NCBI GenBank assembly: GCA_002269645.1
Contig: NIVC01000022.1
Coordinates: forward strand, 248,001-312,000
Source of the DNA: Macrostomum lignano
Lineage: Eukaryota
Direction: 5' to 3'
Length of the DNA stretch: 64,000 nt
Position 1 is the stretch's first letter; the number at the start of each line of letters is the position of its first letter. A program made the translations under genes and the position numbers. A model generated the notes under the pieces. It saw nothing but the letters and a program-made list of their open reading frames with translations, was not told the origin of the DNA and made no database searches. Positions 27,027-40,380 of this stretch are shown here, piece by piece.

Positions 27027-30000
27027 TCAGGTGTCATTTTCATAGGTGTCAGTTTGCCTGCTGGCTTGGGACTGGACAGCTCCCTCAACCTGCATCTCCG
27101 CGTAGCTGCCGCTGGGCCGAGCGCCGCTCCCAGCCGATGCCCCAGTCGATTGTCGCTGACGACGTGGCATGGGCGCCGGCGGCAGCGAGGATGTGGCTGG
27201 GACTGCCGGCTGCTGCGGCGGCGGCGGTGCTGGCACCGTGGCGACTGAGCCAGGCGGCTGCGACCGAATAGTATCCAGCTCGAAGCTGGGGACCTGCGGC
27301 GGCTGGGGTTGCTGCGACGGCGGCTGCTTCCTGGAAGTAGTTTGTCTGTGTTACTACTGACAGTAAGGGTAAAAATGAAGTTTTTTGATTTTCTATAAAG
27401 GGTATTTCGATCAATGCCGAAATCGCACCAACGAATAGCATGATACAGTATGTACTTTTGTCAAGACGACAGTCGGACCGTAGCCATGCAGCTACATGTA
27501 CAGTAGAAAGCAAGCAGTCATGCCATTCCACTGACATGTACTCGTACATTGTAAATATGCAGACACGCTTTCTCATCGTCAAGCAGCCTTGGACCTCACC
27601 TGAGCTTCTGGCACTTCTGCCTCATCCAGAGCCAGATGTCGTTGGAGAAGTAGCCGGCGCAGATTCCGGCGGGCAGGAGCAGCAGAAGCAGCAGGAGCGC
27701 CAGGTGCGCATTCGATGCCGCAGGCGGCGGGCTGACTGCCGGCGTCAGGTTGACGCAGACGACAGACTCCGCGTCGCTACAGTCGGCTCGCTGCCTGCAG
27801 GCCGCCCGAGCTGCCGGCTTCTCCTTGGCTTGAACTGAGTCCAGACTCCGTTGCATCTGCAGGCCTGCGGCTGCCGAATACTCGCCGATCTGCGCCAGTT
27901 CGTAGTTGGGGCTTTAGAAGAAAGAATTAGTCCAATTTTCCCAAACTTTTCTCGTTGATTTCTCTTCAATCTGTTCAAAGTTCTTCTTTGACTATTTCAA
28001 GGCTGCTCCGAAAATACCCCTTTGATTTCTACCAAAATTCCCTCTCGATTCTGGCAAGATTCTTTTTGAAATTCCCTCTCGATTTTTGCAAGATTCTTTT
28101 TGAAATTCCCTCGATTCTTCTAAGATTCTTCCAGTAATTCCGCTTTGATCCATCAAAGATTCGTTTTGATATTCCCTCGGGATTCCTTCCAGGATTATTC
28201 AAATACTTTCCACAAACCCTTCTCAACCTTCCCCCTACTTGGGAGATTTTCCTCAAAATTCCCCAGGAACCCGTGCAAGATATCCACAAAATGCTTTTAA
28301 AATTCTCTCCGAAGCTCGTCAGGATTTTAAGTTTACAGCAGCAGGTAATTCATTAATCAAAAGAAGCCCGCCATCAGATTTATCAGCATTGGCTGTCGGG
28401 CCGTCACCTTCCGCCAGCCCTCGGCGCCGCTGCCGAACTGCAGGACGTTCAGCCGGTTCGACCCAGTCCGGTCGTCGCCGATTGGCCGATAGTCGCCGAA
28501 TCGCCGCGGCTTGGCCGACGGGCCTCCTTTGGCGTCGCCGAAAAGAATTCGGTTGCCGCGGGCCTTCATCGCCGCCCGGCTCGGATTCTGCAGCAGGGCG
28601 TCGCAAGCGGCCATCGACGTCGCTGCTACGCAGACGTCCCCGACGGTGGCGAGGCTGCCAAGCAGCAGGGTGGCGGCAGCGTCGGCTGCCAGCGGCGCCC
28701 GGCTGTCCAGGAAGCCGAGGCCGGGCAGCTCGCCGGGCGAGGCCGATCCGCAGGCGGCGACCGCAGCCGGTTCGGTTCTGGCGAACTCGGTTGCCAGGTA
28801 GCAACCGCGAGCCGACTGGAAATAGCTCACCAGCCAGGGTGGCCAGGGCTTCTCCGCTGCCGACGGCGGCCGCGCCAGCAGGCTTCGCTGATGCTCGACG
28901 AAAGCGGCGCTCTGGCCGGCGTCAATTTTGACGCTGAGGCAGCCGGAGCAGAGGTCGGCGCGGCCGGCCAGCCAGGAGCTGGTGGAGCCCACGGCCTCGG
29001 TGGTCAGCAGGGTCAGCCCGCTAGCGGCCGTCTCGGCTCCAGCGAAGTCCAGGAAGTTCGTCAGGTCCTCCAGGGAGCCGAGGAACGGCACGTAGCGGAC
29101 GCGCTGATTTGCGACAAGCCGCAGCAGGTTGGCATTGCTGACGGAGTCCTCGGTGGTGTGCGCGAAGGTCCGGCCGATGCAGATGTCGGCCTCGGCCGCC
29201 AGGCTGAGCAGCTGATCGCGCAGCGACCTGCCGTAGTCCGTGTCGGCGAACACCACGACGATGTAGTCCGCCTGCGGTGGGGGCGGCTCGAGTTGGCTGG
29301 TGGCGGTGCTTCGGGGAAGGTTGAGTGTCAGGGAGGGGGAGGGTTGAGTGTCAGTTAGGGGGAGGGTTGGGTGTCAGTTAGGGGGAGGGTTGAGTGTCAG
29401 GGAGGCGAGGGTTGAGTGTCAGGGAGGCGGAGGGTTGGGTGTCAGGTAGGGGGAGGGTTCAGTGTCAAGGAGGGGGAAGGTTGAGTGTCAGGGAGGCGAG
29501 GGTTGAGTGTCAGGGAGGGGGAGGGTTGAGTGTCAGGGAGGCGAGGGTTGAGTGTCAGGGAGGCGAGGGTTGTGTGTCAGGGAGGCGAGGGTTGAGTGTC
29601 AGGGAGGGGGAGGGTTGAGTGTCAGGGAGGCGAGGGTTGAGTGTCAGAGAGGGGTAGGGTAAGTGTCAGGAAGTGGACGGGTTTAGTGTCAGGGAGGGGT
29701 AGGGTAAGTGTCAGGGTTTCTCCGCGGAGTGGGAAGACGCCCTCAAGAAGGACGATTTTGCCGCCTACATCGGAGCGTGGAAGATCGTCTTCCACCTGCT
29801 GCTCAGGCGTCGTCCAGCCGGCGATCGGCGCCGAGGTGAGTCCGTGAGCTCGGATAGCTCTGGGAACGAGTAATGCCGTTCCCAACCCCGTGCCAAACTA
29901 GGAGCGGGGCGCTGAGGGCGAACCTTAACGGCCAGCCCAATGATGACACTGCCACCAGCAACCAAATAAATAATCCGCCGCCGGCGAACCAACCTGTTAA

Positions 30001-39000: not shown

Positions 39001-40380
39001 ATCCTACATACTGCTCATGTTCACCCTACATACTGCTCATGTTCACCCTACATACTGCTCATGTTCATCCTACATACTGCTCATGTTCACCCTACTTACT
39101 GCTCATGTTCACCCTACATACTGCTCATGTTCATCCTACATACTGCTCATGTTCATCCTACATACTGCTCATGTTCACCCTACATACTGCTCATGTTCAT
39201 CCTACATACTGCTCATGTTCATCCTACATACTGCTCATGTTCACCCTACATACTGCCCATGTTCACCCTACATACTGCTCATGTTCATCCTACATACTGC
39301 TCATGTTCACCCTACATACTGCTCATGTTCACCCTACATACTGCCCATGTTCATCCTACATACTGCTCATGTTCATCCTACATACTGCCCATGTTCATCC
39401 TACATACTGCTCATATTCACCCTACATACTGCTCATGTTCACCCTACATACTGCTCATGTTCACCCTACATACTGCTCATGTTCATCCTACATACTGCTC
39501 ATGTTCATCCTACATACTGCTCATGGTCTTGATGAGAAAGTACTTTCAGAGTCGAGCAGTGCAAAAGATTAGCAACACCTGCTGCTGCTCACCTCAGCCA
39601 AATCGAACACCGACGGACCCGGCGTGAAGACAGCATCAGCCGAACCTGACTCGAATGCCGTGGACATCGGCGCGTCCACTCTGGACGGGACTGTGGCGAA
39701 GACCGGCTGGTTGAGGCGGCTGATTGAGCCGAAGGACTCCATTGCACTGCGGTACTGCAGCAGAAACTCCAGTTGGTCTTCACTGTCCACGTTTGTGAAA
39801 ACTGCAATGGGACATTGCGGGCTGGTGGTGGCAGGTGGCTCATTGTGAGTAAACTTCTCAACTTGTTCAGATTTTATTATAATTTAGCTATGCTTCTGCA
39901 ACCGAAATGTACTCAAATCTGATATGTACTCAGAAACGTTTTGGGTGAAGATTACTCAGCATCTTCAATTGCATTGTCAAACCTCAGGACTGACCTGAAC
40001 TCTTTGTCCATCTCTGCCGTTGCACAGCCGCCACATGCTCGGTAGACTGGCAAACCTCAGCCTGGCAGGAGGCTGGAAATGAATGTCAAACATAAATAGA
40101 TATTTTAGTGCAGTAAATAAGCAGCTGCGCTCCCACTGTTGACTTCGCCACGCGACTTACCGCCGAACCAGCGCTGCAAAATGATATTGCTAAGAGCAGC
40201 ATTAATCCGCGATGAGGCATCCCAGCTGCTGCTGCTGCTGCTGCTGCAGTTTCTCCCTGTCAGAGTCGGCCGCTGTTTTGTGTTGGACAAAATGACAGCG
40301 CGAGCTGCGCAGCTGCTGGCGTCTGCAGCCCAGCCGTGTCCGACCACGCTGGAGAGGATTAAAACTATGGACAGCAGCAT
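27027..40380 (-). CDS. ~1195-aa single-pass receptor with two tandem Venus flytrap (mGluR/ANF-receptor-type) domains. Exons: 40161-40380, 39593-39801, 37612-38130, 36441-36782, 35035-35418, 33893-34348, 28408-29271, 27600-27889, 27027-27330
   Basis: Nine GT-AG exons join in frame (3588 nt including stop). N-terminal signal peptide [21 protein letters not shown]1 motifs: [31 protein letters not shown]. Linker: [18 protein letters not shown]2 motifs: [41 protein letters not shown]...[25 protein letters not shown]. One hydrophobic segment ([20 protein letters not shown]) followed by a Pro/Gln-rich tail. Confidence 0.8.
28010..28185. repeat. Degenerate GATTCTTTTTGAAATTCCCTC-like repeat in a VFT gene intron
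   Basis: Several imperfect copies. Confidence 0.6.
29320..29715. repeat. G-rich ~21-22-bp minisatellite (GGGAGGCGAGGGTTGAGTGTCA)n, target of the LINE insertion
   Basis: Direct reading; the sequence resumes at 33779-33818 after the LINE. Confidence 0.9.
29716..33778 (+). mobile_element. 5'-truncated non-LTR retrotransposon (LOA/R1-like; APE-RT-RNase H-CCHC) in an intron of the VFT receptor gene, antisense to the host
   Basis: 12-bp TSD GTAAGTGTCAGG at 29704-29715 and 33779-33790, (GTAA)n tail at ~33764-33782, an ORF1 C-terminal remnant ending in TAA at 29871-29873, and ORF2 from 29873. Confidence 0.92.
29873..33690 (+). CDS. LINE ORF2 (AP endonuclease, reverse transcriptase, RNase H, CCHC finger) with one frameshift at ~30320
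   Basis: APE: QINLHH..., [26 protein letters not shown]: [32 protein letters not shown]. RNase H: [38 protein letters not shown]. Finger: CPFC...EHHVTFC. Adding one C in the C-run at 30317-30322 joins the 29873 frame to the 30679 frame ([14 protein letters not shown]). Confidence 0.9.
34360..34945. repeat. 24-bp minisatellite (GCTCAGTGTCAGGGAGGGTKGRTG)n
   Basis: Direct reading. Confidence 0.93.
35495..35750. repeat. 29-bp minisatellite (GTCACCAGCCTTTTTCAAGGTCATTTAGG)n
   Basis: Direct reading. Confidence 0.92.
36885..37603. repeat. C-rich 15/16-bp minisatellite (CCCCTCTACCCTTGCT)n
   Basis: Direct reading. Confidence 0.92.
38322..39525. repeat. 22-bp minisatellite (TACTGCTCATGTTCAYCCTACA)n
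   Basis: Direct reading. Confidence 0.95.

Follow-up and report, generated by a model that had tools for sequence, protein, structure and literature searches.

Introduction

Animal sensors of the Venus flytrap (VFT)/LIVBP type couple to a seven-transmembrane (7TM) domain (G-protein-coupled receptors, GPCRs, of class C), to a guanylyl cyclase, to an ion channel or to a tyrosine kinase (Venus kinase receptors, VKRs). The natriuretic peptide receptor NPR-C is, to our knowledge, the lone enzyme-less case in textbook accounts. It has one VFT and a Gi-coupled tail, and its peptides bind at the dimer interface. This study examined 64,000 nucleotides of repeat-rich eukaryotic DNA from the flatworm Macrostomum lignano (contig NIVC01000022.1, positions 248,001 to 312,000; hereafter the window, to which all coordinates refer). 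On its minus strand, from 40380 to 27027, lies a gene whose predicted product carries two VFTs in tandem, a single transmembrane (TM) helix and a short tail with no enzymatic domain, apparently a real and undescribed variant of the VFT receptors.

Several described proteins share parts of this layout. VKRs are activated by amino acids and have been reported from Schistosoma, insects and molluscs (PMC4038586, PMC2680970, PMC3703292), while SmGBP is a truncated flatworm metabotropic glutamate receptor (mGluR) of Schistosoma and Schmidtea that lacks the Cys-rich domain and 7TM, is membrane-associated and binds glutamate (PMC3206071). The amoebal EhVFT is a glycosylphosphatidylinositol (GPI)-anchored VFT protein without a 7TM (PMC12965686), and the BvgS/EvgS sensor kinases and the receptor adenylate cyclases of T. 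brucei place tandem VFT or periplasmic-binding-protein (PBP) domains on one TM helix and relay their signal mechanically (PMC4352136, PMC6027212). An earlier annotation of the window from its letters alone (the sequence-only reading) had not recognised the architecture as a described family, and no description of a metazoan tandem-VFT, single-pass, enzyme-less family was found in the open-access literature. The receptor is not a one-off, however, since the same layout is conserved in molluscs, a brachiopod and M. lignano itself.

Gene structure

Three exons were recognised through ANF_receptor matches in stop-to-stop open stretches (Pfam E=0.008, 1.4e-16 and 0.002), and tracking of donor and acceptor phases led to one consistent GT-AG model of nine exons encoding 1207 aa. 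The nine in-frame exons of the sequence-only reading (~1195 aa) were therefore largely borne out, although a 78-nt exon had been overlooked and the large VFT1 exon probably has another start. The preferred model has 10 GT-AG exons, 3609 nt and 1202 aa, with an open reading frame (ORF) intact throughout, and its features are as follows.

40161..40380, minus strand: exon 1, aa 1-74; ATG at 40380, start of VFT1 lobe 1, GTAAGT donor; exon and donor are the same in the homeologous locus L001 (see below)
40380-40327, minus strand: signal peptide, aa 1-18, by hydropathy
39995..40072, minus strand: exon 2, aa 74-100; 78 nt, in frame, AG/GT sites kept in both copies, present in the paralogue annotation P0001 (see below)
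39593..39801, minus strand: exon 3, aa 100-169; VFT1 lobe 1 remnant
37612..38073, minus strand: exon 4, aa 170-323; best-kept part of VFT1 (lobe 2), Pfam E=0.008, AlphaFold2 (AF2) pLDDT 70-90
36441..36782, minus strand: exon 5, aa 324-437; VFT1 continued, junction DDLV|VSQV the same as in P0001
35035..35418, minus strand: exon 6, aa 438-565; end of VFT1, linker, first VFT2 strand and helix (from aa 521)
35229-35206, minus strand: inter-VFT linker CSGVCPNC, aa 501-508, in exon 6
33893..34348, minus strand: exon 7, aa 566-717; VFT2 lobe 1 with Ser659 and Thr682, Pfam ANF_receptor 1.4e-16
28408..29271, minus strand: exon 8, aa 718-1005; VFT2 lobe 2 and return to lobe 1, with Tyr730 and Glu809
27600..27889, minus strand: exon 9, aa 1006-1102; stalk, Pro/Ser spacer, TM, basic stop-transfer; 98.6% nucleotide identity to L001
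27799-27755, minus strand: three-Cys stalk, aa 1036-1050, in exon 9
27706-27623, minus strand: TM helix, aa 1067-1094, in exon 9
27027..27330, minus strand: exon 10, aa 1102-1202 and TGA; Pro/Gln-rich cytoplasmic tail
27104-27093, minus strand: Y1178 (YAEM), in the exon 10 tail
27044-27036, minus strand: Y1198 (YEN), in the exon 10 tail
26774..26779, minus strand: AATAAA, candidate polyadenylation signal ~250 nt past the stop (sequence match only)

The only close database proteins are two from M. lignano. P0001 (BOX15_Mlig003031g1, 931 aa) is 91-97% identical to the receptor, and the preferred model is collinear with it over 928 aa at 96.2% identity; the BOX15 models in GenBank derive from a genome-guided RNA-seq transcriptome (PMC5730564). 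P0002 (UniProt A0A1I8IJH9, 319 aa) is an independent model whose aa 71-319 (249 residues) match the C-terminus of the receptor at 99% and which has the same last two junctions and the same ...TDTYENDT stop.

Two exons involved a choice. The second Cys of exon 2 falls in a family Cys column that is at least 90% conserved in the multiple alignment; BLASTP did not align the exon to the ETCQ of a diverged paralogue (P0004, below), and it was the multiple alignment that placed the Cys. The 5' end of exon 4 is probably at 38073 rather than 38166, because comparison with the paralogue shows 6 nonsynonymous and 0 synonymous changes in the additional 93 nt (38166-38074) and because the RNA-based annotation P0001 uses the 38073 junction. 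On these two grounds the acceptor at 38166, which would add 31 aa, was set aside as the primary model and kept as an alternative. In its favour, the spacing of an RT motif would be VFT2-like and the added segment aligns to GFFRTDR of P0004, in the conserved F-x-R-T region of VFT1. The stretch 38074-38166 (minus strand) may recently have become exonic or ceased to be so; it may also reflect an alternative 3' splice site. Acceptors at 34317 or 34295, and at 27911, do not keep the reading frame and were rejected.

Ectodomain

The better preserved of the two VFTs is the second, which spans aa about 521-1005 and is matched by ANF_receptor (PF01094) at 1.6e-28. It is predicted to form a class C-type clamshell (AF2 pLDDT about 85-95), retrieves mGluR2 and the calcium-sensing receptor CaSR from the PDB by phmmer at about 3e-14, and matches the mGluR3 ectodomain by Foldseek at 1.7e-24, with TMt up to 0.85. 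Its residues S659, T682, Y730 and E809 align to S145, T168, Y216 and D295 of mGluR2, the acidic position being Glu as in CaSR (E297). In this alignment VFT2 shows an intact predicted alpha-amino-acid binding signature, Ser659/Thr682/Tyr730/Glu809.

VFT1 is degenerate, as the sequence-only reading had proposed, and was detected only through fold comparison and family hidden Markov models (HMMs). Its large exon alone reaches ANF_receptor at E=0.008, an HMM of the mollusc VFT1 matches residues 173-294 collinearly, and a sequence comparison of VFT1 with the PDB gave no match at E<=1. Under a strict HMM criterion (>=200 positions) only VFT2 of the receptor counts as a VFT. The AF2 model of the N-terminal half has a pTM of 0.70, with pLDDT 70-90 in the lobe-2 part and <50 in the first ~150-170 residues, and retrieved only class C VFT ectodomains from the PDB (E 5e-11 to 5e-9, TM-score about 0.5). 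The predicted models of both halves show a class C-type fold, and the S/T/Y/acidic signature is lost from VFT1.

Between the two VFTs lies the CxxxCxxC linker, CSGVCPNC, whose three Cys (C506, C510 and C513 in the 1207-aa numbering) all occupy family columns that are at least 90% conserved. The Cys of the membrane-proximal stalk (C1041, C1047 and C1055, same numbering) fall in columns that are at least 90% conserved or invariant. Twelve NxS/T sites were found, nearly all in the ectodomain.

Transmembrane helix, tail and missing modules

Hydropathy identified only two strong hydrophobic segments, the N-terminal signal peptide (aa 1-18) and one TM helix (Kyte-Doolittle 2.41). Beyond the helix is a low-complexity, Pro/Gln-rich tail of 108 aa (P 20%, Q 14%) that reads ...GSYAEMQV...TDTYENDT and stops at 27027, much as had been described from the letters (~110 aa). 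No Pfam match to NCD3G, 7tm_3, Pkinase, PK_Tyr, a kinase-homology domain or a guanylyl cyclase was obtained in the receptor or in 39 relatives, and no NPR chain occurs among the best 60 PDB sequence matches of the receptor. A tblastn search of the whole window with seven class C 7TM segments found no 7TM-like exon (best E 0.69). The signal peptide, the well-kept second VFT, the Cys linker and the single TM helix given by the sequence-only reading all stand, and so does its statement that no 7TM, kinase or cyclase module is present, which agrees with the Pfam results, the single TM and the tblastn search. The architecture is complete, and the locus is neither a truncated GPCR gene nor a pseudogene.

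A family of tandem-VFT, single-pass proteins

Word-indexed homology searches with the whole protein, VFT2 or a family profile (A2) returned only P0001 and P0002, low-complexity words having swamped the matches, and the family surfaced solely via an exhaustive search of cluster representatives, which yielded 1498 matches. Dozens of these are proteins of 1000-1500 aa with the layout of the receptor. Among the 78 matches of 700-1500 aa, 45 have two full VFTs followed by exactly one TM, 16 have two VFTs and no TM (fragments, possibly secreted forms) and 2 have two VFTs with multiple TMs. The layout of the family is signal peptide, VFT, three Cys, VFT, three Cys, TM and tail, with tail lengths of 20-450 aa, and Pfam finds ANF_receptor and Peripla_BP_6 as the only domains in 39 members. 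Two diverged M. lignano paralogues, which are among the best full-length matches apart from M. lignano fragments, share the layout: P0004 (Mlig025594g1, 1182 aa; BLASTP 1e-138, 32% identity over 1029 aa) and P0152 (Mlig007438g1).

All 30 members that were looked up are named 'hypothetical' or 'uncharacterized', and they come from bivalves and gastropods (Solemya, Dreissena, Potamilus, Mactra, Saccostrea, Pecten, Patella, Batillaria, Bulinus, Physella, Haliotis and Nucella), the brachiopod Lingula and M. lignano, with numerous paralogues in each mollusc genome. For three members the sole source is Logan contigs that barely exceed the length of the ORF (assembled transcripts), and the full ORFs on these transcript-sized contigs indicate that the single-pass form exists in mRNA. 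The best full-length matches outside Macrostomum are one-TM proteins, and in a crude neighbour-joining (NJ) tree of VFT2, built without bootstrap, the one-TM proteins form one large cluster apart from the 7TM relatives, with the receptor and its paralogues inside. By layout and similarity, these comparisons place the receptor as a diverged member of an unnamed spiralian family.

The binding signature of VFT2 is widespread in the family: across 39 members including the receptor and P0004, Ser is kept in 36, Thr or Ser in 35, Tyr in 38 and Glu or Asp in 34. In the 37 mollusc and brachiopod members the S/T/Y/acidic positions are kept in 34, 33, 37 and 33 for VFT2 and in 26, 32, 29 and 29 for VFT1. 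The flatworm branch, unlike the mollusc and brachiopod members, has let VFT1 decay.

The search also returned larger relatives with a 7TM. P0102 (1307 aa) has two ANF_receptor domains and 7tm_3, with Cys-linked VFT repeats like those of the receptor, and P0008 (Sinanodonta woodiana KAL3856574.1) and P0010 (~2800 aa) have at least five ANF_receptor domains, as counted from Pfam stretches, and 7tm_3. These multi-VFT class C GPCRs also appear to be undescribed.

Tyrosine motifs in the cytoplasmic tail

Phosphorylated YxxM is the docking class of p85 and phosphorylated YxN that of Grb2; YxxM also meets the YxxPhi rule of AP-2. Phosphorylated YxxP belongs to the Crk/Nck/Abl/RasGAP class of SH2 ligands and pY-[ILV]-x-P to the PLC-gamma class. 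The sequence-only reading had pointed to YAEM and YEN as p85 and Grb2 sites and had suggested looking for their conservation in relatives. Both motifs are literally present in the tail. For the family, motif counts in 42 single-pass tails were compared with those expected from 500 composition-preserving shuffles. YxxM (5 sites vs 4.6 expected), YxN (22 vs 18.3) and Yxx[LIVMF] (45 vs 47) are not enriched in these tails, which leaves the p85/Grb2 reading unsupported. The conserved motif is instead YxxP, with 47 sites in 33 of the 42 tails vs 21 +/- 4 expected, and above all Y[ILV]xP, with 29 sites vs 3.0 +/- 1.7 expected, a count reached in 0 of the 500 shuffles. YxxP usually lies 10-27 residues past the TM, as D-P-Y-I/L-T/N-P or I/V-Y-D/A/E-E-P.

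YxxP is absent from the tail of the window receptor. Each of the three M. lignano paralogues has tail tyrosines in acidic surroundings: YAEM and YEN in the window receptor, YDVP in P0004, and YAYG and YDTA in P0152. That two tail tyrosines fit some SH2 class is not statistically remarkable alone, and YAEM fits a YxxPhi endocytic signal as well as it fits YxxM. Judged by motif enrichment, the family evidence supports the importance of a tyrosine-based motif and not p85 or Grb2 as the partners; phosphotyrosine docking in general is plausible.

Selection on the receptor gene

L001 (NIVC01002690.1) is a homeologous M. lignano locus that is collinear with the receptor gene across exons and introns, and in which all receptor exons and splice sites are kept. 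Nucleotide identity between the two is 95.6-98.6% in exons and about 88-95% in introns and the 3' flank. The nine-exon coding sequence differs from L001 by 66 synonymous and 40 nonsynonymous changes, a ratio of nonsynonymous to synonymous rates (dN/dS) of 0.21 (binomial p=5e-15). The exons for the stalk, TM and tail differ by 12 synonymous and 2 nonsynonymous changes (p=4e-6), and the tail alone by 9 and 1 (p=4e-5), low nonsynonymous counts that indicate that purifying selection maintains the TM and tail as a reading frame. The receptor is under purifying selection in all its parts, TM and tail included. The concern of the sequence-only reading that the gene might be a pseudogene is contradicted by the intact ORF, the dN/dS of 0.21 and the splice sites kept in L001.

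L001 itself has a 1-bp deletion at ~17543, in the large VFT2 exon (the counterpart of exon 8, near window position 28640). The deletion accounts for the truncated P0001 annotation, which ends in ...LATVGTSA, and the L001 exons downstream of it are still 97-99% conserved. It is an indel from long-read assembly, or else one homeologue is beginning to turn into a pseudogene.

Genomic context

The other features of the window are listed below.

about 22084-25020, plus strand: 4-hydroxyphenylpyruvate dioxygenase (HPD), convergent with the receptor gene
15531-16319, minus strand: first exon of a Na+/Ca2+ exchanger (Na_Ca_ex 3e-18), beyond HPD
29873-33690, plus strand: non-LTR (long terminal repeat) retrotransposon in intron 7; a 1003-aa ORF with RVT_1 and RNase_H (30679..33690), preceded by a 190-aa ORF
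38321-39525: intron minisatellite, 22-bp x55
36880-37598: intron minisatellite, 16/32-bp x45
35480-35752: intron minisatellite, 29-bp x9
34359-34948: intron minisatellite, 24-bp x25
29313-29716: intron minisatellite, 23-bp x18
41139-43256, minus strand: second non-LTR reverse transcriptase ORF, 705 aa, just upstream of the receptor start
54784-57966, minus strand: LTR-retrotransposon pol ORF, 1060 aa; RVT_1, RNase H-like, integrase zinc-binding and core
750-6624: satellite, 5.9 kb, about 600 copies of CTCCCTGTCT

Downstream of the receptor gene, minisatellites follow the AATAAA and the 3' end of HPD lies near 25.0 kb, in agreement with the repeats and convergent HPD gene noted from the letters. 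L001 shows the HPD-receptor pair in synteny, the neighbour there being annotated with a Glyoxalase domain. Intron 7 measures 4.6 kb in the window because of the non-LTR retrotransposon inside it, compared with 745 bp in L001, and since L001 has no retrotransposon there the insertion in the window copy is recent. Minisatellites make up much of most receptor introns, and the paralogue has them with other copy numbers; the arrays at 34359-34948 and 29313-29716 have a related GTCAGGGAGGG unit in common. The satellite at 750-6624 shows complete strand asymmetry (no A on the plus strand, AT skew -1.0) and gives rise, in several frames, to spurious ORFs as long as 2000 aa. A 323-aa ORF at 10435-11406 (minus strand) with Pfam Decapeptide/Pentapeptide matches was dismissed, as it overlies a 30-bp x30 tandem repeat (10519-11410) and is most likely a translated minisatellite.

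Proposed function and alternative explanations

We propose that the protein is a dimeric receptor for an amino acid or other small ligand, in which closure of VFT2 would be passed via stalk and helix to a tyrosine-phosphorylated, adaptor-docking tail; in our judgement this has a little better than an even chance of being right. It would be a type-I membrane protein composed of a signal peptide, VFT1, a three-Cys linker, VFT2, a three-Cys stalk, the TM helix and a short non-enzymatic tail. The membrane-proximal VFT2 would close on an amino acid or a similar small carboxylate or amine ligand, and the ectodomain would act as a dimer, as in class C receptors, NPRs and VKRs. The ligand-driven reorientation would then travel through the disulfide-stiffened Cys stalk and the single helix to the tails, while in the flatworm the degenerate VFT1 may act as a non-binding cap with a structural, dimerisation or modulatory role. 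Because the tail has no enzyme, output would go via partners. In the likeliest route, a tyrosine kinase, either cytoplasmic or belonging to a partner, would phosphorylate acidic-context tyrosines (D-x-Y-[ILV]-x-P or Y-[DAE]-E-P as the consensus of the family, YAEM and YEN in the window receptor), and SH2 adaptors would then dock. The family may be able to sense amino acids even though it has no GPCR, kinase or cyclase module.

Several points weigh against this proposal. With pLDDT <50 over its first 150-170 residues, VFT1 is better called a remnant than a demonstrable clamshell. VFT2 of P0004 keeps only two of the four signature residues (the other two being F and Q), so ligand binding is not obligatory in the clade. 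The window tail may work differently from the mollusc tails, since it has no YxxP and its own YxxM and YxN are not family-conserved. One Lingula one-TM member falls outside the main NJ cluster, in a tree that carries no support values. The case for transcription of the receptor locus is indirect, consisting of the RNA-derived annotation of the paralogue, P0002 and substitution patterns that together suggest it. Finally, dimerisation, ligand class, phosphorylation and adaptors are what we infer beyond the observed architecture, selection, fold, signature, family and motif enrichment.

There are several potential explanations other than an adaptor-docking receptor. The strongest, which we nevertheless consider doubtful, is that the protein is a receptor that binds or clears its ligand without signalling, or an amino-acid binder at the surface, like NPR-C or SmGBP, with tail tyrosines that serve as sorting or endocytosis signals. 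The lack of any enzymatic or G-protein-coupling module, the YxxPhi character of YAEM (AP-2 type, as good a fit as YxxM), the highly variable length of the family tails (20-450 aa) and the enzyme-less precedents NPR-C, SmGBP (PMC3206071) and GPI-anchored EhVFT (PMC12965686) would all be expected of such a protein. However, the family motif YxxP has Pro at +3 and is not YxxPhi, and Yxx[LIVMF] is as frequent as chance predicts (45 vs 47 expected); in addition, purifying selection over the whole tail (9:1) exceeds the need of a four-residue sorting signal, and the rigid, conserved Cys stalk hints at conformational coupling.

It is unlikely that the protein works as an accessory subunit, or as one that binds the ligand, and forms heterodimers by way of its VFTs with a signalling receptor of the same animal (for example a VKR, a class C GPCR or a tandem-VFT GPCR), to which it would lend ligand specificity or modulation, its own tail being secondary. 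Class C VFTs are obligate dimers and often heteromeric (GABA-B, T1R), 7tm_3-bearing relatives have the same tandem-VFT and Cys-linker ectodomain (P0102, P0008, P0010), and a degenerate VFT1 is expected of a non-binding partner domain; VKRs occur in both Platyhelminthes and Mollusca (PMC3703292). No candidate partner is encoded nearby in the window, however, motif conservation and selection both argue for a role of the tail itself, and the many paralogues per mollusc genome are more like primary chemoreceptors. It is very improbable that the locus is artefactual or dead, whether as a truncated class C GPCR or VKR gene with its other exons elsewhere or as a decaying duplicate in a partly duplicated genome: the truncating L001 deletion, the degenerate VFT1, the retrotransposon in intron 7 and the 93-nt stretch with 6 nonsynonymous and 0 synonymous changes speak for it, but they are set against an ORF intact through 10 exons with canonical sites, a dN/dS of 0.21 (p=5e-15) that is lower still in the TM and tail, at least 45 relatives (some of them on contigs of transcript size) that have the same C-terminal architecture and end in a stop of their own, the lack of 7TM-like sequence in the 64 kb with a convergent gene ~2 kb past the stop, and the possibility that the L001 indel is an error of a PacBio-based assembly.

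Returning to the adaptor-docking receptor, a broader version of it can be offered as a tentative possibility. The family may be a spiralian 'immunoreceptor-style' group of amino-acid or nutrient receptors, with a tandem VFT, a single helix and a YxxP docking tail as the only output, already present in the common ancestor of flatworms, molluscs and brachiopods and expanded among molluscs as chemoreceptors; in that case the M. lignano member would have a decayed VFT1 and a tail rewired to YxxM/YxN. If the adaptor-docking proposal is true, two VFTs on one helix with nothing but a tyrosine-motif tail would constitute a fifth coupling mode and would offer a natural system for the relay of clamshell closure through a single helix without a fused enzyme. 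It could also point to many unannotated candidate chemoreceptors for amino acids or nutrients in molluscs, including aquaculture species and schistosome-host snails, and in flatworms. RNA interference and transgenesis are available in M. lignano, where the hypothesis is directly testable. If the decoy or accessory explanations hold, the results would still provide useful annotation for dozens of 'hypothetical' proteins.

Comparison with known receptors

The likeness of the receptor to BvgS/EvgS and the trypanosome cyclases is convergent and restricted to architecture; those proteins belong to an unrelated sequence class (type II PBP-like) and are fused to a histidine kinase or a cyclase. With NPR-C the receptor shares an ANF_receptor-type ectodomain, a single TM and a short enzyme-less tail, and it lacks the kinase-homology and cyclase domains of NPR-A/B. 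SmGBP is a single VFT of 488 aa with no C-terminal TM or tail, whereas the receptor has two VFTs, a stalk, a TM and a tail under selection. VKRs resemble the receptor in having a class C-like VFT and one TM helix, and they occur in the same phyla; the receptor differs in its tandem rather than single VFT and in having no tyrosine-kinase domain, its tail carrying tyrosine motifs only.

Class C GPCRs (mGluR2/3/5, CaSR, T1R) are the closest relatives of VFT2 in sequence and structure and have the S/T/Y/acidic signature in common with it, and the CSxxCxxC linker of the receptor resembles the first residues of their Cys-rich domain. The receptor differs from them in having three-Cys mini-modules instead of NCD3G, no 7tm_3, two VFTs, a single TM and a short tail. 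The tandem- and multi-VFT class C GPCRs of molluscs (P0102, P0008) have the same head-to-tail VFTs joined by short Cys linkers, but they end in 7tm_3 and cluster apart from the one-TM proteins in the NJ tree.

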